DNA of 64,000 nt from Paramoeba atlantica (taxonomy: Eukaryota > Protista > Discosea). The notes beneath the pieces were generated by a model that had not been told where the DNA came from, did not search any database, and worked only from the letters and a program-made list of their open reading frames with translations. Below, one piece after another: positions 14,760-64,000 of this stretch. A program made the position numbers and the translations under genes. Location: NCBI GenBank assembly GCA_977017575.1, contig CDRNVI010000023.1:310001-374000 (forward strand), written 5' to 3'. Numbering within the stretch: position 1 is the first letter of the stretch; every line of letters begins with the position of its first letter.

Positions 14760-17700
14760 ATGTCTTCAAAGAAGGAAAGAAATCATTCAGCTACAAAGGA
14801 ATTTAACTTGTCGACTTCTCAAGCCGAATATCCTTTCGAAAAGTTTAAGGAAAACAACCCCTTTGTGCAGGTTTACAATACAGATGGTGAGGAAGAACAC
14901 CACCAAAAGGACAACCGTTCCTGTGAGTTTTTGTCGCATCCACGCAATTTACCATTTGTCTTTACCGGAACAAAAAGCATGTCGAATTGGAGCACATCGC
15001 AGCCGAAAGAAGTTTTTACTCCATCGACCGTCAGCGCATCTTCTCGCACATCGTCGATGCAAAGTAGTAACACATTTCGTGAATATAATGTGAAAAGTCA
15101 ATATTCGGCCTCACAAGAGGTCTTTTCCGACTTCGCAGGTATTCAAACCGACTCCCCATCGCAACCAATTTCTTTCTTCAATGGCTCGCAAAAGCAAATC
15201 CGTGCTGTCAATCCGAATGTCGCTCTTCCTGTTTCTTGCACCGATAATGCTCCTTACACTAGTCATATCACACATGGATCTCCATCCGTTCCGCAAGACA
15301 ATTCAATTTGTGACAATCCCTTTTCACTATCTTCCGTCGTTGCACCAGCCCATCCGTTTACACCCCATTTTTCTTACAACCACAGCAGAGCAAGTTTTAA
15401 TTCAATCAACCCTCCCGAAGGTTCTTCACCAACCTCGACGCAAACTAACAGGGTTAACCAAAATTCATCTTCAGCAACCGACGGACTAACCTCCCTTTTC
15501 TCATCCCTCCAAGTCTCCTCTTCGGCGTCCCGCAACCCTCTCGCTCCCGCGAACTCCGAAAACCCCGCAACCTCCAAAACCCTCGCGGCGAGCCTTCAAT
15601 CCGCCTTCTACTCGACACCCCCCCAACCTCCACCCCCACCCCCACCCCCCTCCCCCCACCGTGGGAGGCTACCTCCCCCCACCCCCCTCCCCCACGACCC
15701 TCTCCCCATCGACCCCTACCTCCCCACACTGGTCCACACGATCCAGCACAACCCCGTGACCTGTGTGGTCGGGGAAACGGGCTGTGGGAAAAGTACCCAA
15801 GTCCCTCTCGCACTGTGGCGAAATCTTACCGAAATCTCCCCTCACACGGGAAGAGAGCCCCCATCCCCTGTGAGGGGCGAGACGACCTTTTCGGGGGGGG
15901 GTGAGTCGTCAGCGTACGACTAAGGGGGTAAACCCCCTTAGCCCACGTACTACGACTACTACGGCTAACACGCCCTATTTGGTCGTGACCCAGCCCCGAC
16001 GCTTGGCCGCCATCTCCCTGGCCCAGCGTGTCGCGGCTCTCCTTGGGGAGCCGCTGGGGCGCACGGTGGGGTATGCGATTGCCAACGACAGTGTCGGGGG
16101 GCCACACACACGAATTGTGTTCGTCACCACAGGGTACCTCCTGCAGTCGTTGCTGCATCACACCCGTCTGTGGGACCGTCTCACCCACCTGGTGTTTGAC
16201 GAGGCCCACGAGCGCGGGTTGGAGGAGGATATGACCCTGTTGGTGGTGAAGCTTAAGCTGGCCCGGGAACGGGAGGCGGCCGCGGTAAAAGGGTGGCACG
16301 GTGGACCCCCCCATGACACGTTGGACCCACAGCCTTCGGGTGTCCCTACAAACGCTAAAAGGCTTATCATCATGTCCGCAACGCTGGAGACGGAGCGTTT
16401 TGTGACGTACTTTCACTCGGTTCAAGGCGGACCCCCACCGTGTCTACAAGTCGGCACCCGCCGGTTTCCGGTCGTCGAGTATTATCTCGAGACACTCCCG
16501 TTGGAGATCACCTCCGGGCTCACGCGGGAGGGCACAGAGGCGATCCAGAACTGGGCCTCTCGCCTGGTTCGTCTCCCCCGTGAGCCTCCAGGGCTGGACG
16601 CGATGCATCGCCTGTTGCTTTGCCTTATCCCAGCGGTTTGTAAACCCATGGGATGTGTGCTCGTGTTCCTCCCGGGGCTACAGGAGATGGAACTGCTCTA
16701 CTCCGAGCGTGAGGTTCTACAACAACGTGCCGCACAGCGTTGGGCGGAGACCCCCGACGCCGAGTTGGAGCTTTCCTTCTTTTTGCTCCACTCCACGGTG
16801 CCGCTGGAGGAGCAGCAAAAGGCCACCCGACGGCTCTCCTCGACAAGTTCTCCCGTGTGTCGGGTAATTTTAGCAACGAATCTCGCGGAGACAAGTCTCA
16901 CTATTCCCGATGTCCACATTGTGCTGGACAGCGGGCTTAGTCGACGCGTGTGCTACGCGGAGCGGCAAAAAATGGCACGGCTTCAAACCGTGTGGTGTTC
17001 CCAGGGCGCCGCCCGTCAACGTGCTGGGCGAGCGGGACGTACCCAGACGGGGATCGTGTGTCGTTTATACAGCGAACGTCTCCACGACGTCGTGATGCCT
17101 CCGGTAGAGCCCTCAGAGCTCTACCCGCTGGAATACAGCGTGCTTCGTGCTCGGGTCCACCTGAGAGCCTTTGGGACTCCTCAGGAGGTAATGTCACGTT
17201 TTATCGAGGCTCCGGCCACGGGTGCGGTCGAGGACGCGCTGCGGGGACTGATACAGGCCCAGCTACTCGGCAACCCTCCGGGGTATGAAGTTCGCCCACT
17301 TGGGGTGGTGGTGAGCCAACTTCCATTAAGTGTCACTCACAGCGGGTGGCTCGTTTCGGCAGCGTATTTAGGGATTATCCCCGAGACCCTGGTAGTGGTC
17401 TGTGGGCTTTCACTATCAAAACCGCTGTTTAAATATCCTATGCGGGTGTTTTACGATAACAATGCAGATTATCACGCGGCGTTTGCACAGACCGTTGAAG
17501 GGGTGCGCTCTCTGTCAGCAGGCTTTGCTAATGATATTGTGGCCTTTCTGGTGATTTACCTGGAAGCAAGCACCTATCTCGGAATGGACCGAGCCCAGAC
17601 AAGAGAGGCCGGGCAGTCGAACGCACTGCGTGAGTTTTGTCGAATACACAGTCTGATCTACGCCCGGGTACGGTCCTTTGTGACAGAGGTCCGCGGAATT

Positions 17701-19917
17701 GCACAGAAACTGCTCAAGCTTATACCCACATTGCTCAGTGTGCGAGATCGCCAGCTCCTCGAGGTGATGGAGAAACTGCCCTGTTGTGGAACCTCCCTGA
17801 CGGCAGCCGAAACCACCCGTCTCCTTCGCATGCGTCGAGAAATCAACCCGAATGTTTTCCGGCCGCGTCGTCTGTCTCTGTTTATACTCCTCGCAAGTCA
17901 GTCTCATGTCTTAGTGATGCAGCCCCCACGAGAATCCGAGGCACACCGCGAGCTCAACCCCCAGGAAGTGGAATTCGGTTCCACCTCTCTTATTGTAAAA
18001 AACAGCACAGAAGCGAGTGTTCGGGCCCATTTTGAGGAACTAGGACCTGTGCGTCAGATTACCAAATCGCAGTACGGCAGTCATCTCAAAGTGGAGTTCG
18101 TCAATGACCAATTCTATCACGATGGGTATTTGGAAACAAATGTGGAGAAGGAGAACGATGATTCAGATGAGGAATACTCCTCCTCCTCAGAAGAGGAGTC
18201 CGAAATGTGCGAAAGCTTGAGCACGGTCGAAATCCCTCCTCCCCTTGTCTGTACCTTTTGTGACACCCCCGCACCCCATAGAGAGACCACTCTAGGATCA
18301 AATCCTAATGACAACGACCCCGACGCTAACTCGAATCCTTCCCTGGCCACCTTTTCTTCCTCCTCCTCCTCCTCCTCCTTCTCTCGTGGTTTCTGTTCCT
18401 CTTCCCGCCGAAAATTCTACGGCACGGAGCTCTGCGGCTACAGTGATGACGATGAGGATGCTGATGAAGAAATCGATCCCCAACCGACTAAATCGAGCCC
18501 CACCCCCTCCCCCCCTCCCCCCCTCCTTCGACGCTTCCCCCTCCCCGTCGACCTCCTCCGACGGCTCTACCGTAAAGAAAAAGGCAAACTCCAATCCGAG
18601 TTCGCTCACATCCAGGATAGCCACTTTCTCGGCTTCTCCTCCAAACCGAAAGTTTTGTATCAACTGTTAACCAACCCCAATGCCGGGGTCTTGTTTTCGT
18701 CCTCTTCTTCTTTTTCACAAGATGAAAGCGAAAACAACGAAAACAACAGATTCGTGGGAGGAAAACAAAAGCCACACAAAAGGAGTCCCGCACACGGGGA
18801 CGCCCGTGTGTTTCTCGACAGCTGGAGTGTCGTGGAGGGGTACTACGACAGCTCACCCTACGGTGGGCCCCACCGAGGGGACCACGGCCACGGGGCCAGC
18901 CCCCGGGGCCTGGCCTACCCTCCATTTCCCTCCCCCTTTCCCCGGGCCGCCCCGCCCCGGTACGGGTACGCGCTCCAGACCCAGGCGGTGGGTCGCGAGG
19001 CCCACACGTCCTATGTGGTCACCAGCGCCCTGCTGCCGGGGGTGGAGACCGGGGAGGAGTTCCTGTGCTTTATGGTGTCGCAGTTTAGTGGGCCCCAGGC
19101 CCGGGGGGCCACGGTGTGGGGCGCGGGGCTCGACCCTTCGGGGTTTGTGCGACACTGGGGGTACGGGGACCCCCGGGTCCCGGGCCAGGGTCACGGGTTC
19201 CACCATGTGTACCTCCCCCTGTGGGGGGTGATGGTGATGAATGGGCTGCGGGTGGTCCTCGCGCTGGGGGCGGTGATGGCCCCGATGGTGGGGGGGATGG
19301 GACGGGTGCGACGGCGGGTGAGGGCCTCCCTGGAGGTGTTAAACCGGTTTATGCAGGCCAGGAGGGGGGGGGTGCTGCGTTGTGCGGCGAGGGGTTGTCA
19401 GAGCGTGACCTCGGGTTCGTACGCGAGGGGGACTCACTTTTGTGGGGGGCAGAAGGAGAAGCGCATGACGTTGCGCTTGCCCAACCTTGCGGCGTGTTTT
19501 CAAGCGATGGGGATGAAGGCGCCGTGCTCAGAGAGTGCGGTGGGTTCCCGGGAGGAGCAGCCCAAGCAAGCTCTTCCTTTGATGGATTACGGTGCTCTTT
19601 GGGACACGTTTAAAAAGACGTTCAAAAAACCTTTGAGGAAAAAAGAGGAGAGAAGAGAGTGGGAAGAGGACGGAGAATGGGAAGAGGACGGAGAATGGGA
19701 AGAGGACGGAGAATGGGAAGAGGACGGAGAATGTGAAGCGGAAGGGGATGAGGAAGATGGAGAAGAGGGGGACGAGGAAGAGGGGGACGATTCCTGGATA
19801 GAGGGTCTTCCAAGTGTTCCGAAACCTGTTTTAGAACTCGGCGCCATGTTGTATCCTCTTTTTGAGAATCCCGATGCGAAGAACGTAATTCTGGGACCGC
19901 ACGCATGCTATTATTGA
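14760..19917 (+). CDS. DEAH/RHA-family ATP-dependent RNA helicase, split by a +1 frameshift at a G9 run (15893-15901)
   Basis: Motif I GETGCGKST is in the first ORF. TQPRRLAA, DEAH, SAT, LATNLAETSLTIPDV and QRAGRAGR are in the second ORF, followed by HA2-like sequence. Confidence 0.9.
19657..19728 (+). repeat. 4 x 18-bp coding tandem repeat (EWEEDG)
   Basis: GA(G/A)TGGGAAGAGGACGGA repeated in the acidic helicase tail. Confidence 0.9.
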
Positions 19918-21944: not shown

Positions 21945-22547
21945 ATGTCTCTGGTACGCACATCCCTGGCATCAGATGCGCAACCGACTGTACGTCCAGG
22001 TAAGGTTACTGGAGCGTCGCTACCCGCGGAATATGATTTAATGCGGCTCTTACAAAAGGTAGAGAATCTTGACTCTACCTGGAGCACGAATACACCAGCG
22101 GGTGAATGGGATGGTGTCGAATGCGATAAAGCTGGCAAGGTGGTCTATATAGATTGGTCGTATTTAAATCTTCGTGGTGAACTGAATCTGAAATATTTGC
22201 CCGTCACATTGGTGGCTCTACTTCTTCATGACAATGAGTTTTCGGGAAATTTCCCTTTTGAAGCTTTTCCTAGAACGTTAAAAACTATTACTTTATCTAG
22301 CAACCAATTTACGGGCACCCCAAACCTGTGTAATTTGCCGCCCATGCTAAAGCAAATCGCATTCGGTCACAACGAATTTGATGGCTGTGTTGATTTTTCT
22401 TCACTCCCGCTAACTTTGAGAGAGTTATATTTGAATCGTAACATAAACTTGGAAGGTTACTTGGATGTAGATGGCGTACTAAAGAATTTGTGCTATAATG
22501 TTGAATGGACGCGAATTACGGTGAGTAATGGAATACTAAAAACTTGA
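21945..22547 (+). CDS. Leucine-rich repeat protein (LRR-4)
   Basis: GKVTGASLPAEYDL...WSTNTPAGEWDGVEC cap followed by LRR units. Confidence 0.9.
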   Translation: MSLVRTSLASDAQPTVRPGKVTGASLPAEYDLMRLLQKVENLDSTWSTNTPAGEWDGVECDKAGKVVYIDWSYLNLRGELNLKYLPVTLVALLLHDNEFSGNFPFEAFPRTLKTITLSSNQFTGTPNLCNLPPMLKQIAFGHNEFDGCVDFSSLPLTLRELYLNRNINLEGYLDVDGVLKNLCYNVEWTRITVSNGILKT

Positions 22548-24765: not shown

Positions 24766-24850
24766 CAAGGTCGGGACTGTCCCTCTTGTCGATGAAGCAG
24801 GGGACGCACCTTCACCCCTCCCCGGCTCGCTCCCCCGGAGTGAGTTTTCT
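24766..24850 (+). repeat. Core fragment of the SL-associated element family
   Basis: AAGGTCGGGACTGTCCCTCTTGTCGATGAAGCAGGGGACGCAC matches 37477-37510 and 58982-59025. Confidence 0.7.
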
Positions 24851-25582
24851 TCCCCCTCGGCTTAATAAAAGCGCGCGTACCTCTTCGAACGACCTAGGCA
24901 TCACGTTAGTGAGGTAGCGACAAAAGGAAAGCAACATTTCAAAAACTCAAGAAACACTCAGACCATATGGACAGGTGTCGAAAAATTCTCCAAGTATTTT
25001 CGCCCGTTGAAACAGCTTCGCTTCAGCGGGTGCGGCCGGGTGCGCCAAGTAATCGTAATTTCGCCGGTCCACCCCTCTAATTACAATTTTAGTTAATAAA
25101 GCTGTATCCGTTTCTCCACTTCTTTTTTTTTTGCTGTCTAATATCTCAACTTGCTTTCCTTTCTCATCTTAGTTGTACTCGTCTTACTTGCACTTCTTTC
25201 CCGTGCTTCTCACGCCTACCTCTTCAATCTATGAAATTACCCGAGTCTGCTGATCAGTGAACTATTTTGTAGTCTTTTCTTGTAACGAAACCTATCTTGT
25301 GCTTTTCTTAAAAACAAAAAAAAATTACAAACTAATTGCCGCAGCAAAATTATAATATTAAACATGCCCACTCTCAGTCTTCCTTAAAATCCAAGCACTG
25401 AAGACGTTTTTCAGAACAACACTAGTCCTGACAACAAGAAGCCATAAGGCCTAGTAACTTAGCCCACCAAAAATAATAGTAACTATAAGAAATAATGATA
25501 CTAACACTTTATTCGCGATGTATGAAAAAAAGGAGATTTAGGTTTGTAATTCAAAAGGAATATACGGAAGTCTATCTTGAAT

Positions 25583-29276: not shown

Positions 29277-29897
29277 ATGCTTCTGCTTCTTGCACTTCAC
29301 ACATCGGATACACAATCGACACATGCTGTACATCGAGGAAAGGTTACCGGAGCTTCACTACCAGTGGAATTTGATTTAATGCGACTCACACAGAATGTTG
29401 AGAATCCCGACACTACATGGAGTACGAATACAACAGCGTGCATGTGGCGGGGGATAGCGTGCAATACGGCTGATGAGGTGATCACTATTGACTGGATAAA
29501 CTTCAAGCTCCGCGGTGAGCTTCACCTGAAATATTTTCCCGTGACTTTGAAGAGGCTCTATATCCATCATAATATTTTTTCAGGAGATTTTTCCTTCGAA
29601 ATATCACCTCCAGTACTCGTATCTATGATAATAGCGGGTAACAATTTCAACGGCACTCCAAATTTTTGTAGCCTGCCTCCTATGCTAGAATATCTTTCGA
29701 TGAGTAATAATAAATTTGAAGGTCGCGTTGATTTTTCTTCCCTTCCTTTAACCTTGAATGAAATGTATCTGAACTCTAATCTGAAGTTGCAGGGAACTTT
29801 GGATGTTAGCGGAGTATTGAAGAATTTGTATTACAATGTTCAAGCGACACAAATTAAGGTCAGTAGTGGAAACCTTTATCGCTTTAAATGGTCGTAG
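29277..29897 (+). CDS. Leucine-rich repeat protein (LRR-5)
   Basis: Close paralogue of LRR-4 (GKVTGASLPVEFDL...ACMWRGIAC). Confidence 0.9.
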   Translation: MLLLLALHTSDTQSTHAVHRGKVTGASLPVEFDLMRLTQNVENPDTTWSTNTTACMWRGIACNTADEVITIDWINFKLRGELHLKYFPVTLKRLYIHHNIFSGDFSFEISPPVLVSMIIAGNNFNGTPNFCSLPPMLEYLSMSNNKFEGRVDFSSLPLTLNEMYLNSNLKLQGTLDVSGVLKNLYYNVQATQIKVSSGNLYRFKWS

Positions 29898-36383: not shown

Positions 36384-37360
36384 TGACTCGACATGTACAA
36401 CCTACTCGCAGAACATCATTGATACGAGCTCAGAAACCTGAAGGGACCACTTAGAACCCGTGGTGTTACAATGAAGATACATGTATAGAAGACAAGCGCT
36501 TTTTTTCAAATGATACATTTCGCCCCTCTAAAGTGGGAGAACTGCTACCCTAGTCGCCCAGTCCAAACGGGATATCCAACCTGAAGTTTCGCGAGTATTT
36601 CGGGATCAGGGACTATTTTTCCTATGCGCCCAACTGAGGAGTCTCACGTAGTTCACGAATCAACTCGCGAGGTTTTTATTCGCCAGAGATTCAATCCAAA
36701 CCTCCCATGCAAGAGGAACATGCGGAAATTTTCGCCGGGTCAGCTATCTGCAATTCCTGCATCGACGCCTAATGGTCATCTTCCCCCAGATCTTGCTTTG
36801 TAAGTCTCCACCTGTAAGTAAAATCATGGTCTGCAGCTTAGGATACAAAAAAGCTCCGAATCAGAATTTCATTTTTCGCTCAAATTAGTACATATAGATA
36901 ATGAGGTAATGAAAAAGTGTTAATTACCACTTTAGCACATATTCTGTAATTACCACATTAGCACATCCAGGGTGTGCTTTAATGTATCTCGAAGACTAGC
37001 ATAAAAGAAGCTTTGCACTTTCTACTCCGAATGTTTCGTATCTTGTCTTTCTTATGGTTTTTGATTTCTATACAACATTTTTCATGTCTCTCATACGCAC
37101 ACTCCTGGCATCAGATACACAATCGACTGTACGTCTAGGTAAGGTTACTGGAGCTTCACTACCAGTGGAATATGATTTAATGCAATTCTTACAAGGCGTA
37201 GAGAATCATCATTCTACCTGGGGTACGAGTACGCCAGCGTGTGAATGGAAACATATCGATTGCGATATATCTGGCAATGTAGTCGATCTGCAGTGGTCGC
37301 ATTTACACCTTCGTGGTGAGCTGAATCTGAAATATTTGCCCGTCATATTGGTGAATCTAC

Positions 37361-38097
37361 AATAAAAATACAGTTTCTGTACCTTGTTGGTACATTTTCC
37401 TAGCTCATCATTTCTCTCCCGGAAACGGGCATATTTTTACTATGTTAATTCCCGTTTCCGGATGGCGCTAGGAGAGGAACTGTCCCTCTTGTCGCAAAGT
37501 AGGGGTGCGCCTCCCTTCCCTCATCTCCCAGCACCCCGCTCGGAACACGGTTCCGAGTCCCCATGCGCTGCAGGACCCTACTACGGGACCACGCGTCGTG
37601 CCTCCACCATCCGGCGACACCGGTACTGCTGCGCGCAGGAGGCTTCCATATACCGGAAGTCTCCTACACGGCGAGCAAACACGTTGTATGCGTGTTCTAG
37701 AGGATGCTCTATGCACCTCTCTTGCTCACCAGCCGTGGCGGATTCTGTGGGACCCCGATGCCCATGATGCATCATGAACCATGACTCCATTTGCCAGCAT
37801 GCATCCATGGCCCTGACCATGTTGTATCATGAACCATGGAAGTTATTTGTAGCATGTACGATGGGAATACCATTCGCGTCCCACAAATCCGTATGTCTTC
37901 CCTGGCAGGACTGCGCTCTCTTCCCGTCTCGGGACATCTTATCCCGATGAAGCCGTTCTTTTCGTTTCCCCAGGAGGATATGCCGTGCTTTTCCCGGTGT
38001 CGTAGAGTGAGGCGACAGGTTCAGCAGGGAGCGCCCTTTGCGTCACCCCTGCTGAGCCCAGTATCTCTACAGGTTTTCGCCCTGTATGAATAAAACC
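37361..38097 (+). mobile_element. SL-RNA-like-headed insertion element, longest copy
   Basis: Begins AATAAAAATACAGTTTCTGTACCTTGTTG|GTAC and has AATAAAA at both ends. 37390-37812 is homologous to the reverse complement of 49017-49447. Confidence 0.75.
37368..37465 (+). ncRNA. Spliced-leader RNA-like sequence (3' part of exon, 5' splice site, hairpin)
   Basis: Core ACAGTTTCTGTAC at 37370-37382 and TTG|GT at 37387-37391, with the canonical 7-nt spacing. A TGTACC/GGTACA stem spans the splice site. No clear Sm site or T-tract. Confidence 0.6.
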
Positions 38098-38739
38098 TTT
38101 CATCGTAATGAATTTTCGGGAAATTTTGATTTTGAAGTACTGCCTCCAAGATTAGAAATAATTTCTTTATCTGGCAACCAATTTACGGGCACCCCAAACC
38201 TCTGTAATCTGCCCATGCTAGAATACGCCTCCATCAGTCACAACGAATTTCAAGGTTATATGAACTTTTATTCGCTCCCGCTAACCTTGACCCATTTGTT
38301 TTTGAAATTTAACAGTAAATTGGAAGGTTACTTGAACGTAGGTGGTGTACTGAAGAATTTGTATTACAATGTTGGGGGGACGCGGATTAAAGTGAGTAAT
38401 GGGAGACTAAAACAAGTAATGAGATCATACAAATAAATATGTTTTACTTAGGTAAGTCTTTAGTGGCAGAAATGGTCCTGATTTATTTTAAGATAGTAGA
38501 CTAGCTTACTGGCAACTTCTTTCCTTTTTCGGTCAAACTAAAGCAAATTCGGCCCTTTTGTTCAATTATTGTTAAATATTCTCACCGCTAAATACCGTCC
38601 GATCCATAATTGAGGAATAACTTTAAATAGTGCGCAAGATTTTAAGAGATTAAGTATTGCACTAATTGAATGCGAAAGACATTATAGCTATGTGAAAGAT
38701 ATAATGTGAAAGACAATGTACATCTCAATGTACATCTTA

Positions 38740-39234
38740 ATGCACACTGATAATGTATATAGGCACACTGATAATGCATAAAACTCGCACACTGATAATA
38801 CATAATGCACATTGATAATGCATAATTGACACTGATAGTGCATGAAGACTATATTCATACAAAGACTGTTTTTTCTGATAATTTTTGCTGCATTTTAGTA
38901 TGAGTGAACCGCGTGTACGGTGGAATTGTTGGGCTTCGCAAATTGCTTCCCACTAACGTCAGACGTTTTTGTCCTGCAGACGGGTAAACAAGGTCTTATC
39001 ATCATTACGGGTTGGGTATGGTGGAATTGATGGGCCTCGCAAATTGCTTCCCACTAACTTCAGACGTTTTTCTATTGCAGACGGGGAAACAAGGTCTTGG
39101 CTTTACTACGGGTTGGGTATGGTGAAATTGTTGGGCTTACCTTTGAAGGGCTTACCCAAAATATGCATTATCAGTGTGCGAGTTTTATGCATTATCAGTG
39201 CGCGAGTTTTATGCATTATCAGTGTGCGAGTTTT
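38740..39234. repeat. Inverted arrays of a 24-bp motif framing a tandem repeat of about 101 bp
   Basis: ATGCATTATCAGTG(T/C)GCGAGTTTT x3 at 39163-39234, with degenerate reverse-complement copies at 38740-38845. The 101-bp unit occurs about 2.2 times at 38919-39138. Confidence 0.8.
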
Positions 39235-40153
39235 TATCCCCGCCCCCCTGGACCCCGCCCTGGACCCCCTGGTTCCCCGAGTCCAAAATACATCGGGGGT
39301 CATTTTTCTAAAACACATCATTTGTTCTCCCTTTTTTATGCTTTGTTACATGTATAATATTTTCTTTCGCGTTTTAGCTTGTTTTCTTTGTGTTTGATAG
39401 ATCTCGTTCCTTTATTCCTTTTTTTTATGGAGAAATCTTTGCCACAACCCGCTCGACCACCACCCAGTGTCCAACCGGCAGGCTTTTCTTGATCGAGTAA
39501 GCTGGCCACCTTCCAGTGGTAAGATGAATGATTATTTCCACTCACGCACCTCCCCCCAACCTGGACCCGGCTTCGCCCTCCCCTATACCTTCCATATGTA
39601 ATATCCTTCGGTATGTGTTTATATCCCCCTGGAGTCCCCTAGACCCCCCACCCGGATTCTCCAGCGAACTCCATAGCCGAAAAAACGACAAGTACCTTTG
39701 CCATTGGTGTCTCCTGGGACCTGACTGGGTTTGCATTTTACTGGTTTCAGCCCTCTTATGAATCGGACGGTAGGGGAAATGTGGTAGTTGTAGGGTGGTG
39801 TATATGGAGGCCTTCACGCAACTCGTGGGCCTCACCAGTAGTACAAGTGAGGTTACCTATTTTTTATGTTAACTATTCTGCAAAAACGTAAAAATTTTAG
39901 GGGTTGAATTTTTTTAGCGATCCAGTTTTTTTCAAAAAACCAAACAATGTGCAATCTTCGCTGAATTCCACCTTATTTTATAATAACACTCAATGGGTTA
40001 AGGTGTTAAATGAGATCATGTTATTTTTCACGTGAGAACATGTGAACTCTTCCTCATAGTTTGTCACCGCAAATAATGTATCCGCATATTTCCTCCTAGG
40101 GACGATAATATTGTGTTGCTTTTTGCTTCATAATTACTACTATAGTAACATTG

Positions 40154-41701
40154 ATGGAATCGCATTCTGCATCACAAAGCTTTTCTCCGGAGCCGTGCGA
40201 GCCGCCGCCTTCCCGCACGTTACATCCCAACCCACCTGTCTTCTCCCCTGAACTCGAAACAAACCATCCAAACGCAGCTCACGAAGGGTTTCCCAATTCT
40301 GATAATCCTTCCGGTCACGTCTCTTCCGAGGAGACCAGCCATTCCGAACCATTTCTTGTGGACCCTGTCCCCACAGAACACTCCTCACAAAACCGAGCCT
40401 CTCACTCAACTCCCACGTTCGAAAATCATCCACCCCCTCCTGAACCTCCTTTCCATGATTCTTTTTTCGACCCCCCGCACCCTCCTCAAGATACGAAAAA
40501 GAGCGAACAGCCCTCCCCCCTTTCTACCCGAGAGTTTCCTCCCCGACGTCTTCGCTCCTTATTCTCCTCTTCCTCCTCCTCTCAACCCCTCAAACGGTTG
40601 GCTTCCCTTTCCCACCCTCTCCGCCGACCCCTCCCCACCTCCTCTCATCATGGATCACATTACCCCACACGTACTCGGGTGGCCTTGCAGCCTTCTGCTC
40701 CTGCCCCTGCTCCTTCACGAGAGTCTTCTGCTGCTGCTGCTTCCTTATCCGACCCTGCTGCTTCTTTTTCTTCTTCTTCTTTTTCTTTTTCTAATCCCAC
40801 TACAAATTCTTTATTCTCTCCACAACAACAACAACAACAACATGACCAACAACAAAAGAATACCAAACAACAGCAACACGATTTCTTCTTTTCTGAAATC
40901 CGTGACGCCCTTCGTCGTCTCGACAACGCCTCCGAGAGCTGTTCCCAGGACCTGGCCTCGATCCACACCCAGTTCGAGGGGGTGCTGGTCCACCAGGAGC
41001 AGCTCACGGGGCGGATGGCAGAGAACACCCAGCACGTGCGGTACATCCTCACACGGCTGTCCGCGCTGCAGCAGTCCCAGAACCGGCTGAAGGGGAAAGG
41101 GGGGCTGCTGCGGGGGGTGCTGGGCTACGCCTACTCCCCGTTGGTGTTTTGGTTTAAAGGGGTGTGGCTGGTGGTGCATTTCGTGCTCGGCACCCTGAGG
41201 GGGTTGTGGTTGTGGCAAAGGGGGGTGAGAGCGCTCACGGGAGGGGGCGGGGGGAGCAAGGAAAGAGGGAAAAGGCAAGGGAAGGGGGAAGAGGGGGTGG
41301 TGCGCCATTTTTGGACACACCCGTGGTGGAGCCTTTGGCGGCGTTCGGGGAGTAATCGGACTTCGGAGTCGGGAAAAGGGGGTGGGGAGATCGGCACGGC
41401 GGTGGGAAAAGAAGGCTCGGGTTTCCAGGTTTCGGATCCTAGAGTTTCGTTGCCGAGCGTATTGGAAGGCGAGAGCGCAGAAGGAGGTCGCGAAGGAAAC
41501 TCTTCAACGCCCTTGTTGAGAAATGTAGAAGAGCGCGTTTCGGATGAGACCGCCCCACTTAATCTTAAAGTATCAGAGGCGGAGAATAGTGAATTTCGAC
41601 CCTTACCCCGTCGTTTGAGCACTCACTCGCTAAGCACTCGCACAGATTCCGATGCTCATTCTCTTTTATATCGGTTGAAAGGGGTTCCTTTGGAGTCCTG
41701 A
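40154..41701 (+). CDS. Hypothetical protein (Pro/Ser-rich N-terminus, coiled coil, hydrophobic segment)
   Basis: 515-aa ORF with coiled-coil-like IRDALRRLDNASESCSQDLASI and hydrophobic LVFWFKGVWLVVHFVLGTL. Confidence 0.75.
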   Translation: MESHSASQSFSPEPCEPPPSRTLHPNPPVFSPELETNHPNAAHEGFPNSDNPSGHVSSEETSHSEPFLVDPVPTEHSSQNRASHSTPTFENHPPPPEPPFHDSFFDPPHPPQDTKKSEQPSPLSTREFPPRRLRSLFSSSSSSQPLKRLASLSHPLRRPLPTSSHHGSHYPTRTRVALQPSAPAPAPSRESSAAAASLSDPAASFSSSSFSFSNPTTNSLFSPQQQQQQHDQQQKNTKQQQHDFFFSEIRDALRRLDNASESCSQDLASIHTQFEGVLVHQEQLTGRMAENTQHVRYILTRLSALQQSQNRLKGKGGLLRGVLGYAYSPLVFWFKGVWLVVHFVLGTLRGLWLWQRGVRALTGGGGGSKERGKRQGKGEEGVVRHFWTHPWWSLWRRSGSNRTSESGKGGGEIGTAVGKEGSGFQVSDPRVSLPSVLEGESAEGGREGNSSTPLLRNVEERVSDETAPLNLKVSEAENSEFRPLPRRLSTHSLSTRTDSDAHSLLYRLKGVPLES

Positions 41702-49016: not shown

Positions 49017-49447
49017 CAGGGCCATGGATGCATGCTGGCAAATGGAGTCATGGTTCATGATGCATCATGGGCATCGGGGTCCCACAGAATCCACCACGGC
49101 TGGTGAGCAAGAGAGGTGCATAGAACATCCTCTAGAACACGCATACAACGTGTTTGCTCGCCGTGTGGGAGACTTCCGGTATATGGAAGCCTCTTGAGCG
49201 CAGAAGCACCGGTGTCGCGTTTGTGCGAAGGGTGTGGCACGCCGCGTGGTCCCGTAGAAGGGTCCTGCAGCGCTCGGAGGACGGTTCCGAGCGGGGTGGT
49301 GGGAGATGAGGGAAGGGAGGCGCACCCCTACTTTGCGACAAGAGGGACAGTTCCTCTCCTAGCGCCATCCGGAAACGGGCATTAACATAGTGAAAATATC
49401 CCCGTTTCCGGGAGAGTAAAGATGAGCTAGAAATAGATAGAAATGTA
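49017..49447 (-). mobile_element. Second copy of the SL-associated element, with the exon portion degenerate or missing
   Basis: Reverse complement is highly similar to 37390-37812. Its 5' end reads GATAAAGATACATTTCTATCTATTTCTAGCTCATC. Confidence 0.8.
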
Positions 49448-55340: not shown

Positions 55341-55976
55341 ATTATTATTATTGTTAATAACTTATTAACAATGCTTATTAATAATAAGCACTTTGACAGT
55401 AGTTTAATTTTTTAGGAAATTATTATTGTGTATGTTCTGAATGGATCATCCGCGCAACCATGCAGCGAAACTTCGCTCTCAAAAGCCTCCAACAAACTCG
55501 TCCCTTCTGGGATTTTTCACCTCGTATCGCACAGTTCTTGTGCTTACCACAAGCGTGTTCGCGTTTCTTACCATGGCTTACAACGTGCAAGAGCAGATGC
55601 ACTCCGAAAGAAGGTGTGTAAAATGCAAAGCGCAACCTTATAGAGGTTGAAAAAGAAAACATGGCACAAACGTTGGACTACGATTTAAAACGCCATACTA
55701 GGCGTAGATCCATCTTTGCTTCTAGGCGAATTAGCACTAGACAATCTAGTTGAATTAAGATCGCGTCGTAAAATACTTTTTTATTGCACGTTTATCCACT
55801 TTTGCACTACGTCTATTGTAAGAGTGGCGGTGCCAAAGATCTCTATGGAACCCTCTTATTATTACATATTTTTTGTTAGAAAACATTTCTCACTAAAGAA
55901 ATTACCTAGTCATCAATTTCTTTTGTGCACTTCCTTTGATCAAACTGGCGAAAGCGTATACCTACGCTTAATAAAA

Positions 55977-58382
55977 ATGTCGGCTAATAGCTGTTCGTTG
56001 GAAGCTGACAATCACATGTCAAACAGCGTGGAATTGCACCTCAGTTCCGCGCACAATCCATTAGACGGGTATGACCCGCACTCGAGTTCAACACCAGCTC
56101 TTTTTAGCCAACCCCACGAAATAAGTAAGTCAACGTCCAATCACCCTTTTCCAGGTGAGCACAATACCTCGCATTCTACCTCCACGACCTCAAACCCATC
56201 TCCACTGCATATCGATCCTGTTTCCGACCCCCACCTGGACCACATTTTGGAAAGTCCCACACTTCCGATCAGTGACAGCGCATACTCCCCTGTAGCGGAG
56301 CACGAACTACCGCCACAGCCTACCGATCTTCCTGTACCAGGATCCTCGCATGAAACCGATCCCTCCTTCGGCTCTCTTCCCCCTCATCCCTCTCTACCCT
56401 ATCCTCCTCCCGGGTTCTACCCCCCGTACTACGATCCCATAGAGTCCGCCAAATGGGGTACCCCCGGAACCACCGCGGAGCCAAGCGGTTTCCTATCCCA
56501 ACCCTGCCCCTTTACCGACCCCTCGGGGTTCGACCCTTCCTCCCTGTACGACCCCAACATGGGGTCCTACCCACCCCCGTTGGATCCACACTACCTGAAC
56601 CCGGAGACGGGTCTCCCGTACCCCTACCCCCCAGAGATGTACTCCGGCTCAGCGAACTGGGCCATGACGGAGGGGGTTGTGGGGTCCGTGGAATCTCCCT
56701 GGGCCGCCGGGGATGCCTATCCCCCCGTCCCCCCCATGGACATCACACCCGGGCCACCCTCCATGTTATCCCCTATGATCTCCAATACAGGGGGTTCCTC
56801 CTCCTACCTTCCCTCCCACCTACCCCAGGGAACTGTCCCGGAGCCCTACTCCCCGACGGTAAACCCCTTTTACCGTCCCAATGAATCGTTTCCCCCTCCC
56901 AGCGGTTCAGCAGAGCCGGTAGATGAAATGGAACAGATTCCTAGTAAGCCTAAAAAGAGAAGCTCGTCACCTCTTTTTGCTGCTACAGCAACAGCCCCTC
57001 CACCCACAATATTGCCTCCCCTCCCCCCTAACCTCTCCCTCCCCCACTCCGGGTCTCTTGTCCCTCGGGCGCCTCTCCTGGAGGAGAGTCCCTTTATGGA
57101 ACCACTACGTTCTCGCACCGGCGCCTCCCTGTCTCACATTAAACTCGACCAACGCTACGGTTGTAAAGGGAGTCACAAAGAAAGCTCAAACAAAAACGCG
57201 TTCAAAGAAGAAACCCAAACCCCTACCGAAACGAACACCTTCGCCAAACCCACGTTTCACGAAAAAAATGAAAACAAACCACCGCAACATGGGTTTCCTA
57301 CCGAAACCCCCCAAAACACAACTCTACCCCCACCTCTTTTGCGGGAACAAAACCTTAACCCTTTTCCTCTCTCAAAACAAACCAACCCTCCTCCTCACCA
57401 CAACCACAACAACAACAAAAGGGTTTCCCCATCGCCTCCCCCCTCTCCTCGACCCTCCCGGGACGCCCTCCCCCACTTCCTCCTCTCCCCCACCACCCCC
57501 CCCTCCCCCCCCCTCCACTTCCACGACCTCCCCCCCGGGGACCTCCTCGAGTACCACTACGACCTCAGCCTCATCCTCCACACCATCGCGACCGCCCACA
57601 CCCTCGCCCTTGTCTTCGGCCCCGAGGGTAACCCCCACGCCCTCCCCCCCCACGCCTACCTCTGGTGCGCGGACTACGCCGCGGAGGTGAGGGCGCTGGT
57701 CCCCGGGGCCGCGGTCAACGCCCGGGAGGAGGCCGTGGGGGAGGGGGACACGCTCAAGGAGGTCACGGGGGCCTTGCTGTCGCGGGTCCCCGAGATGGGG
57801 TTCCTGCGGTCCATGTCGCTGTACCAGGCGATGGCGACGCGGGTGGATCTCACGCCGCTGTACAGGGCGGTGTGTGAGATGTTCGCGGGGGGGCTGGGGA
57901 GCTACGAGGTGCAGTTCCGGGGGCTGTTCGGGGTGCCGACGAGGGTGGTGGTGAGGACGGGAGGGGGGGGGGAGGGATCGGGGGGGGGACCGAGGGTGTT
58001 TCGGGGAAAGGTGGCGTGGGAGAGCCTGCCGGAGGCCCCGGCGATGTTTAGTAATGGGAAAATGGTGGAGGAGATCGTTTCCGGGGAAAGGGATTGTGGG
58101 GTAGATAATGAGGTAGGGGTAGGGGAGGGTAGAACAGAATGGGATAGGACGGCCTCATGTGACGCGAATGTCGTGTCAAAGTCGGAAGCCAGTGCCAATG
58201 GAAAAAGCGAGGTGAGGGGTCTCCCATTGGATAAGGGAGAGAGGGGTGAGACACAGGTAAGATCCGCGTCAGTAAGACGCGGCTTAATGTCTTCGCGGAT
58301 GCGGCGGATGAGGCTCAGTCTTCTATTCGGAATGCTTTCGGTCTCGGCAATATGTTTTTGGGCACGTCGGAAGAGAAATTAG
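55977..58382 (+). CDS. Hypothetical Pro-rich protein with a possible C-terminal membrane anchor
   Basis: 801-aa ORF from ATG 55977 with a globular-looking segment near the C-terminus, ending in LSLLFGMLSVSAICFWARRKRN. Confidence 0.75.
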   Translation: MSANSCSLEADNHMSNSVELHLSSAHNPLDGYDPHSSSTPALFSQPHEISKSTSNHPFPGEHNTSHSTSTTSNPSPLHIDPVSDPHLDHILESPTLPISDSAYSPVAEHELPPQPTDLPVPGSSHETDPSFGSLPPHPSLPYPPPGFYPPYYDPIESAKWGTPGTTAEPSGFLSQPCPFTDPSGFDPSSLYDPNMGSYPPPLDPHYLNPETGLPYPYPPEMYSGSANWAMTEGVVGSVESPWAAGDAYPPVPPMDITPGPPSMLSPMISNTGGSSSYLPSHLPQGTVPEPYSPTVNPFYRPNESFPPPSGSAEPVDEMEQIPSKPKKRSSSPLFAATATAPPPTILPPLPPNLSLPHSGSLVPRAPLLEESPFMEPLRSRTGASLSHIKLDQRYGCKGSHKESSNKNAFKEETQTPTETNTFAKPTFHEKNENKPPQHGFPTETPQNTTLPPPLLREQNLNPFPLSKQTNPPPHHNHNNNKRVSPSPPPSPRPSRDALPHFLLSPTTPPSPPLHFHDLPPGDLLEYHYDLSLILHTIATAHTLALVFGPEGNPHALPPHAYLWCADYAAEVRALVPGAAVNAREEAVGEGDTLKEVTGALLSRVPEMGFLRSMSLYQAMATRVDLTPLYRAVCEMFAGGLGSYEVQFRGLFGVPTRVVVRTGGGGEGSGGGPRVFRGKVAWESLPEAPAMFSNGKMVEEIVSGERDCGVDNEVGVGEGRTEWDRTASCDANVVSKSEASANGKSEVRGLPLDKGERGETQVRSASVRRGLMSSRMRRMRLSLLFGMLSVSAICFWARRKRN

Positions 58383-58883: not shown

Positions 58884-59100
58884 AGTAAACTTCGCATCGG
58901 ATACAGTTTCTGTACCTCGTTGGTACATTACCTTAGTTCATCTTTTTTATGCCCGGAGACGGGCATACTCTTACTGTACCTAAGGTCGGAACTGTCCCTC
59001 TTTATTACTGAAGCAGGGGACGCGCTTCCACCCCTTCACGCCTCCCCGACTCGCTCCCTTGGAGTGAATGCTTCCCTCTCTTTGCTTCTTTTTCTCCTGC
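58884..59100 (+). ncRNA. Spliced-leader RNA-like locus with the downstream family core
   Basis: GATACAGTTTCTGTACCTCGTTG|GTAC (core 58903-58915), then the hairpin ATGCCCG-GAGA-CGGGCAT and the shared GGAACTGTCCCTCTT..AGCAGGGGAC core. Confidence 0.6.
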
Positions 59101-63546: not shown

Positions 63547-64000
63547 ATGTTTATTACACAGTCTTCCGACACACCCCAAGCGAATTCTGTGAGAAGCTGT
63601 ACTCGTCCTTCCAAAGTACGAGGTGTTTCCTTGCCACAAGAATACGAACTGGCGCGACTTATACAAAATGTAGAAACTCAACATCCCTCCTGGAGTACCG
63701 CAACACCCGCTTGTCAATGGCACCGTGTAAAATGCAATCAAGAAAAAAAGGTTAGCGAAATTTCTTGGTCGCATAGCTCGCTGAGTGGTGAACTTCATCT
63801 GTCTTGTCTTCCGCTTTCCACTACATTATTTAGCGTTGCAGACAACAAGCTCACAGGAAGCGTAGATCTTACGCATTTGCCGGAAGTAATGCATAGACTC
63901 AATCTTTCACGAAACCGCTTCTCGGGCCATCCAGATCTCACAAGACTACCGCACAAAATGGAAGAATTGGAAGGGGACGCACTTCGCACTCTTCACCCCT
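63547..64000 (+). CDS. LRR protein (LRR-11), tandem paralogue of LRR-10, partial and probably interrupted near 63970
   Basis: Open from ATG 63547 to the window end and collinear with LRR-10 until ATGGAAGAATTG. It then switches to a sequence resembling the SL-element core. Confidence 0.75.
   Translation, partial: MFITQSSDTPQANSVRSCTRPSKVRGVSLPQEYELARLIQNVETQHPSWSTATPACQWHRVKCNQEKKVSEISWSHSSLSGELHLSCLPLSTTLFSVADNKLTGSVDLTHLPEVMHRLNLSRNRFSGHPDLTRLPHKMEELEGDALRTLHP

Follow-up and report, generated by a model that had tools for sequence, protein, structure and literature searches.

R2-type elements, the reference system for target-primed reverse transcription, are under development for gene insertion; they normally carry a 5′ ribozyme and have rDNA as their target. 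R2 SIDEs are short, internally deleted, non-autonomous R2 elements: non-coding hitchhikers of a site-specific R2-type LINE that keep its 3′ RNA signal for target-primed reverse transcription, use its target site, have variable 5′ junctions and no regular target duplication, and take their 5′ end from an HDV-like ribozyme on a 28S co-transcript (Eickbush & Eickbush 2012, PMC3414825). Within the Euglenozoa, the CRE/SLACS/CZAR LINEs of trypanosomatids have a restriction-like endonuclease and a close link to the spliced leader (SL); their site-specific target is the SL RNA gene, at the nt 11/12 boundary of its exon, and they end in poly(A) (PMC12278014). Kinetoplastids also harbour the non-autonomous retroposons RIME, NARTc and SIDER of the ingi/L1Tc (APE) clade, which have a conserved 5′ module across families, Pr77, acting as an internal promoter and yielding unspliced RNA (PMC8190864, PMC2323293). 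In dinoflagellates a DNA-encoded 5′ leader marks the copy of a trans-spliced RNA; in that case the recycled sequences are host genes, and relicts become stacked via an AG inside the leader (PMC6050394, PMC5585692). In a partial literature search we did not find leader-headed retroelements or LRR-targeted R2-like elements described for kinetoplastids or diplonemids, and the sequence of the leader described below was not found in the literature searched.

The insert considered here lies within an LRR gene of the window (the whole 64,000-nucleotide stretch of DNA analysed) and belongs to a dispersed non-coding repeat of about 735 nt that we call family A. Most likely it is a SIDE-like hitchhiker of an R2-type LINE, unusual in having the host SL for a 5′ end and in aiming at a codon-specific site of LRR genes. 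The non-coding nature, the 3′ RNA signal, the target site held in common with the partner, the variable 5′ junctions and the lack of a regular target duplication are all as in R2 SIDEs. In contrast to these, however, the family A body is not an evident internal deletion of its putative partner (the RT element at locus L043), its 5′ end is the host SL rather than a ribozyme product, and its target is a protein-coding LRR motif rather than rDNA. Unlike CRE/SLACS/CZAR, which it resembles in its SL link and site specificity, family A has the SL as its own 5′ end, and its tail is a hairpin with a short A-rich run; the insert sits within an LRR gene and not inside an SL RNA gene at nt 11/12. It has a 5′ module conserved across families, like RIME, NARTc and SIDER, but these do not begin with SL. 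Whereas the carriers of dinoflagellate relict leaders are host genes, here they are mobile elements, the 16-nt stacked relict is absent from family A, and the head forms part of a conserved predicted fold. Newly seen in this work are compensatory evidence for a terminal hairpin, an empty site supplied by paralogs, head starts that are specific to families, and a predicted pairing of leader with body.

The insert occupies window positions 37363–38097 on the + strand, its start being placed to within ± 2 nt, and coincides with a GC-rich block (37361–38097) in a surrounding LRR gene that is AT-richer. Its SL-derived head (37363–37389) corresponds to host SL exon nt 12–38 with one G>A at SL nt 16; counting the two A's at 37361–37362 moves the head start to SL nt 10/11. 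The original prediction started from the geometry of an SL core, 7 nt ending in TTG and then GTA, and this is indeed what is found at 37370–37390: the 13-mer core ACAGTTTCTGTAC at 37370–37382 is followed by CTTGTTG and then by GTAC at 37390. Matches to ACAGTTTCTGTAC number two in the window (37370 and 58903) against 0.06 expected. Behind the head, all on the + strand, come a conserved 5′ module common to the sister families B and C (37390–37490, recognised by paired-cell and compensatory analysis and by folding), a GC-rich, non-coding body specific to family A (37491–38017, 87–99% identical among copies), the family A 3′ stem-loop (38018–38058) and a 3′-terminal module (38063–38097) made up of ATCTCT, a 5-bp hairpin (38068–38072/38082–38086), TGA and an A-rich tail ending in CC. 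Elsewhere in the window, GC-rich islands (58–61% GC) at 15901–19917, 40151–41701 and 55716–58382 carry long ORFs, namely a 1338-aa helicase-domain protein and ORFs of 516 aa and 888 aa without Pfam match.

That the insert is non-coding, as first proposed, is borne out by substitutions without codon-position bias in any open frame (40/41/29, 29/22/31 and 39/46/44 changes by codon position in the three longest frames of family A), and there is no conserved Pfam-sized ORF among family A copies. A search of Rfam, at the gathering threshold and also at E ≤ 1, returned no SL, ribozyme or other family in the element, and a tRNA search gave no match. The head of a canonical SINE comes from a Pol III gene (tRNA, 7SL or 5S), whereas the head here is the Pol II-transcribed SL exon. 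The AATAAAA present at both ends is not a target duplication, in line with the original prediction, because the left copy is a substituted form of SL nt 10–16 (GATAAAG) and the right copy is the element's own tail, a region that reads GAATAAAACC in three of four subfamily members.

The true SL RNA genes of the host lie in tandem with 5S rRNA. On contig C3 the repeated unit is 1454 bp long, with the 5S rRNA gene on the strand opposite the SL gene (L031:1230-2700; G000:C3:~780.7–782.2k), and a second array type, with a unit of about 2.56 kb, is found on C97 and C107 in at least 12 and at least 9 repeats. Canonical SL genes were assembled 38 times; the one at L032 begins AGCTTT and the others AACTTT. 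The host exon is 38 nt long and ends in ...CTGTACCTTGTTG, the intron beginning with GTATGAGAAGC (SL gene at L031:1230-1340), and it has the same ...CCTTGTTG end as the head of the element, which reproduces exon nt 11/12–38 except for the one G>A. Comparison with these SL genes thus upheld the identity of the head but left no variant leader of the kind originally proposed: the head is the normal SL of the species, as in the 38 canonical genes, and the bases taken for element-specific substitutions are the same in the host's own leader. Beyond GTA, local alignment against shuffles detected no SL intron similarity in the element body (score 16, shuffles 16.8 ± 2.1). The element does have a helix across the exon end, like the gene at L031:1230-1340, but the 5S-linked tandem arrays, the intron and the two further stem-loops belong to the SL RNA gene only. 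With no SL intron, an exon that starts at nt 11/12 and LRR coding sequence as its upstream flank, the insert is neither an SL RNA gene nor a retrocopy of one.

Across the 45.7-Mb assembly the SL core occurs 811 times, against two occurrences of the reversed control, and no more than 38 of the 811 belong to SL genes. In about 140 of these heads the core is followed by GTAC(A/T)TTTT and the GTAC 5′ module of three non-autonomous families, while most of the remainder (more than 600) continue into unrelated non-GT sequences, for example AATTATTT or ATTATTTAC; some heads with other downstream sequences front RT-encoding elements. As expected of a retrocopy, the leader is joined exactly at the last base of the exon in most of the first 100 places listed, the junction varying by 1–4 nt (GGTAC, GTAC, TTTTT) in a minority of copies. 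The same leader ending at the same exon base in unrelated elements points to acquisition from the host at the RNA level, and the unrelated non-GT followers indicate that the SL was joined as in spliced RNA and not copied from a gene with its splice site. Judged from sequence, the leader was therefore probably acquired from the host via RNA, not inherited from a common element ancestor.

The heads also differ in where they start. Those of the GTAC module mostly begin at SL nt 10–12, 8 of about 17 at nt 11 (examples are L036:600, L039:650, L043:3048 on the − strand and window 37363), as do most heads of the LRR-site RT element, and RT elements behind A-runs have near-full heads with errors in the first 3–4 nt. 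The frequent start at nt 11 may match the CRE/SLACS cut at nt 11/12 by coincidence. Stacked partial leaders were also seen (G000:C1:65003, C2:405026, C3:727101; L051:4204; L055:57), in which a full SL is followed by a 7-nt or 10-nt repeat of its own end with no preceding AG; in a second stacked form a partial 5′ SL piece lies ahead of a full SL, also without an AG acceptor. Among other SL-headed sequences, the one at L034:2178-6865 (G000:C1:~227.7k) has an intact 1551-aa ORF with RVT_1 (2.6e-21) and no APE domain, with another SL-headed element 5.3 kb downstream. L035 (G000:C1:8000-17999) contains a 5093-bp tandem repeat with an SL head on the minus strand of each unit, and its 514-aa and 166-aa ORFs are without Pfam match.

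The prediction of a mobile, SINE-like, structured element headed by SL exon sequence is supported by a dispersed, multi-copy family. A 737-base query found 50 places in the 45.7-Mb assembly, about 20 of them near full length at 87–99% identity. We counted 36 family A 3′ ends, constant in form (...CCCTG(T/C)ATGAA and then a short A-rich run), whereas the 5′ ends vary from SL nt 4 to about nt 30 and beyond, with ten extra bases at one 5′ junction. A constant 3′ end with variable 5′ starts is the signature of target-primed reverse transcription. Five pairs of copies with identical flanks represent duplicate or allelic contigs. C73 repeats the insert locus at 98.5% with the insert in place, and this contig (L002, G000:C73:25193-28928, and L028) duplicates a part of C23 at ~98.5% with both family A copies included; many other insertions are paired in this way, which indicates that the assembly contains both haplotypes or recent segmental duplicates. 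An internally deleted variant of family A at L043:558-968 (− strand) has about 346 nt replaced by 35 other bases, and contigs of two public runs show this variant as well (joint 37437 to 37784). At L041 the element ends lie 4.8 kb apart around an interior without RT, which we read as a nested or rearranged copy.

The repeats noted earlier within the window turned out to be of several kinds. The one at 49017–49433 (− strand) is a second family A copy, 91.5% identical over element positions 36–455, with its 3′ part missing and its SL head damaged. Those at 58900–59088 and 24767–24863 (both + strand) belong instead to the sister families: the former is a family B/C SL-headed fragment with a head from SL nt 16, a T>C in its SL tail (the C variant at 58903) and a partly deleted hairpin, and the latter, placed by sequence comparison, is a headless fragment of the family B/C 5′ region. 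The stretch at 63972–64000 resembles the 5′ module by eye only. Families B and C are each about 580 nt long and share roughly the first 150 nt after the leader with family A at ~81% identity; the tail motif of B is present in about 70 of the first 100 places listed.

At the insertion site the LRR gene is split into a 5′ half of 92 codons (37087–37362, + strand), running from ATG to the codon CAA at position x9 and defined by its translation, and a 3′ half (38098–38436, + strand) that starts FHRNEFSG in the same frame. Both halves are open, with weak LRRNT_2 and LRR matches (LRRNT_2 in the 5′ half), and the frame stops at TAA 37363–37365, the first three bases of the insert. The empty site is supplied by two uninterrupted paralogs in the same window, at 21945–22547 (+ strand; 69% and 61% amino acid identity to the two halves) and at 29277–29897, both collinear with the left and right halves with exactly one codon between the matches. 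This supports the original view of a precise insertion without true target duplication, the net gain being 735 nt, or 737 nt with a 2-nt target loss. Contigs of four public runs, none on record as RNA, were compared with 36400–39000, where their short unitigs broke at the repeat and no empty-site contig was found; a long joint from 37183 to 38347 in the run contigs, with 27 letters on its shorter side, looks like a paralog artefact. A fifth run, possibly of RNA, covers next to none of the stretch.

The same point is used repeatedly. Of about 24 independent family A insertions, eight hit LRR genes, each time in the sense direction and at the boundary of codons 9 and 10 of the LRR unit (LPxxLxxLx|LxxNxFxG); two of eight family B copies, one copy of family C and the L043 RT element occupy this boundary as well. 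The eight family A insertions were cut short at different 5′ points and are thus separate events. Even under the extreme null of an all-LRR genome, correct orientation and 3 of 72 positions accepted, the chance of 8 in 24 is about 5e-6. Two thirds of family A copies lie outside recognisable LRR sequence.

The L043 RT element (flank ...LPSKMRHLN|) stands directly ahead of a family B copy that precedes LRRNEFSG. It carries RVT_1 (1.6e-34) and zf-RVT, and the Pfam search found no APE domain; the best solved relatives of its RT are the R2 proteins 8gh6, 8ibw and 9nl3, with 1.7e-30 for 8gh6 (R2 of Bombyx). By eye, CPIC..H..C (CCHC) and then RPD..E..K can be made out in a shifted frame, where phmmer against solved structures gave no R2 match. 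Copies of L043 type were located at 19 places. What this element has in common with families A, B and C, and with a truncated RT relative in L050, is the terminal module, the last ~35 nt sharing one design: ATCTCT, a 5-bp stem, a 5–9-nt loop, TGA and an A-rich run. In an alignment of 17 sequences the hairpin is paired in 97.6% of cells against 11–64% in slid controls, four of its five pairs show compensatory changes, and its covariation score was reached by none of 500 shuffles. By analogy with R2 and SIDEs, we read this hairpin as a 3′ signal used by the partner enzyme. A partner search using the last 198 nt of the element matched only family A itself, and the L043 RT element shares with family A neither the 5′ module nor any of the 3′ UTR beyond the ~35 terminal bases; from these terminal bases and the common target we infer the pairing of family A with it.

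The RT at L039, whose coding sequence begins right after a family B copy (649–1228), was rejected as a partner, as it ends in poly(A) and has no 3′ similarity to family A. At the DNA level, loci with AATTATTT heads have nothing in common with the L043 RT element except the leader. An ORF at L038:4716-5627 has a DDE_3/Tc3-type transposase domain (1.8e-11), which means that DNA transposons are also present.

Several helices proposed originally are upheld. The helix TGTACC (37378–37383)/GGTACA (37389–37394) across the SL junction is present in the sequence, appears in the predicted minimum-energy fold of each of the three related families and is kept in ~140 copies. The stem at 37419–37461 is real: the family consensus has a 14-bp hairpin here, which has decayed in the insert through one G>T, and the allelic copy on C73 has a different disabling change in the same hairpin, as expected of dead copies; on this sequence evidence the insert itself is taken to be a dead copy of a non-autonomous, non-coding retroposon. 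Twelve copies retain the 3′ stem-loop at 38018–38058, which shows two compensatory pairs and a fold z of −5.1. In the 5′ module, compensatory pairs across families A, B and C support an outer 7-bp helix (37399–37404/37467–37472; three pairs) and an inner hairpin (37419–37429/37451–37461; one pair), and the module consensus is paired in 97.4% of cells against 33–42% when slid (fold z = −5.9). In this module only these two helices have compensatory pairs; because the helices formed with the SL are invariant, covariation can lend them no support.

Folding also predicts that the head pairs with conserved sequence of the element: leader nt 28–32 with the first bases of the body, GGUAC; leader nt 19–26 with a conserved octamer that lies about 90 nt further downstream and reads GAAACUGU in families B and C and GGAACUGU, with one G·U, in family A; and leader nt 14–17 with UCUU just past the octamer. 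In the insert this anti-SL block lies at 37476–37483 (and 37487–37490). The true SL RNA is predicted to form the equivalent stem-loop I using intron bases. By chance, 4.5% of shuffles contain an 8-nt anti-leader match, and anti-SL 7-mers in other families, which fall within T-rich leaders, were set aside as probable chance. A head that pairs with the element and so mimics stem-loop I of SL RNA is at this stage a lead, not a result. Extending it, the leader might be a working part of the GTAC-module elements, which would rebuild stem-loop I with the element in place of the intron, pairing-guided trans-splicing or template jumping then renewing the leader. GGUAC and the anti-SL block, complementary to SL nt 13–26, would pair with the leader, and the resulting 5′ domain may let each generation regain or keep it, replacing the 5′ ribozyme of R2; this may also explain the frequent DNA head start at SL nt 11, where the pairing ends. 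We regard this extension, which draws on modelled folds, as tentative and rather doubtful.

What the evidence favours is that family A is a SIDE-like retroposon of about 735 nt, copied from SL-bearing RNA and mobilised in trans by R2-like retrotransposons that have no APE-type domain and that, in this genome, favour a single fixed position in the LRR coding repeat; we consider this likely. The family is dispersed with a constant 3′ end, is non-coding, and has its 3′ signal and its target in common with an RT partner, and the free-standing SL-derived system of the original prediction gives way to one of several hitchhiker families of an R2-like retrotransposon. The template would be an RNA headed by the host SL, for which normal trans-splicing is the simplest source; the partner protein would recognise the terminal hairpin and prime reverse transcription at a nicked LRR site, with variable loss of 5′ ends, often up to SL nt 11. 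In RNA, the SL head and element sequence would close a 5′ domain resembling stem-loop I of SL RNA. Simple trans-splicing leaves the renewal of the leader unexplained, since daughter copies of family A have TTG and not an AG acceptor ahead of the body, and the junction variation, the stacked leaders without AG and the differences in head start likewise make plain trans-splicing at one acceptor insufficient. The variety of heads may owe something to template jumping by the R2-like enzyme or to a small number of master copies. Template jumping is an established property of R2 enzymes, and one could suppose that the element RNA is unspliced and that the reverse transcriptase adds the head by jumping to a free SL exon or another SL-capped RNA, with the anti-SL block as guide. 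Junctions that have lost 1–4 bases on either side, partial leaders of 7 or 10 bases stacked without AG together with the 5′ stacked forms, and extra untemplated bases at one 5′ junction would all suit such a jump; however, the exact fit of the junction to the end of the exon in most of the first 100 places listed calls for a template ending there, which only a short-lived splicing intermediate would offer, and we think it unlikely that jumping accounts for the head.

Much further from the data is the idea of an element that arose from an SL RNA gene, taking its exon together with the 5′ splice site, and behaves as an SL mimic; its own RNA, or read-through RNA from each copy, would donate the leader in trans-splicing, or the donor site would serve the element's propagation. 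TTG|GTAC in 140 heads and a predicted head pairing with the topology of stem-loop I, in which intron bases form the 3′ strand in the true SL RNA, speak for it, but the missing intron similarity beyond GTA, the lack of any SL-family or other Rfam match, a flank of LRR coding sequence where an SL promoter should be, heads that mostly start about nt 11 without the capped 5′ end, copies without GT and whole SL-headed families without any GT make it highly improbable. Two further ideas are that repair or misassembly displaced a single unit of the ordinary SL array on one occasion, and that the insert is an introner spliced from the LRR mRNA; the insert does add an exact multiple of three bases and has a GT near its start and a CAG 25 nt before its end. 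Yet at least 36 dispersed copies, each with its own flanks, and the absence of SL intron and 5S stand against the former, and copy number and junction anatomy rule out misassembly or a displaced array unit; the ends are TA...CC rather than the GT...AG of an introner, the only GT close to the start comes after a TAA stop, and the CAG near the end is a piece of the conserved terminal hairpin. We give these explanations next to no weight. A SIDE-like retroposon copied from SL-bearing RNA thus remains our preferred reading.

For the biology of these elements, the lineage appears to define its own 5′ end through the host SL where R2 uses a ribozyme, and its target is one codon boundary of a protein repeat, unlike the rDNA of R2. 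In the literature searched, the writing of trans-spliced RNA back into the genome is described for dinoflagellate genes and not for kinetoplastid mobile elements; the ~770 dispersed leader copies are a direct record of this process in a euglenozoan genome. When such genomes are annotated, dispersed leader sequences should not be taken for SL genes. RT elements and their hitchhikers repeatedly break or truncate genes of the large LRR family, and are thus a likely driver of its turnover.
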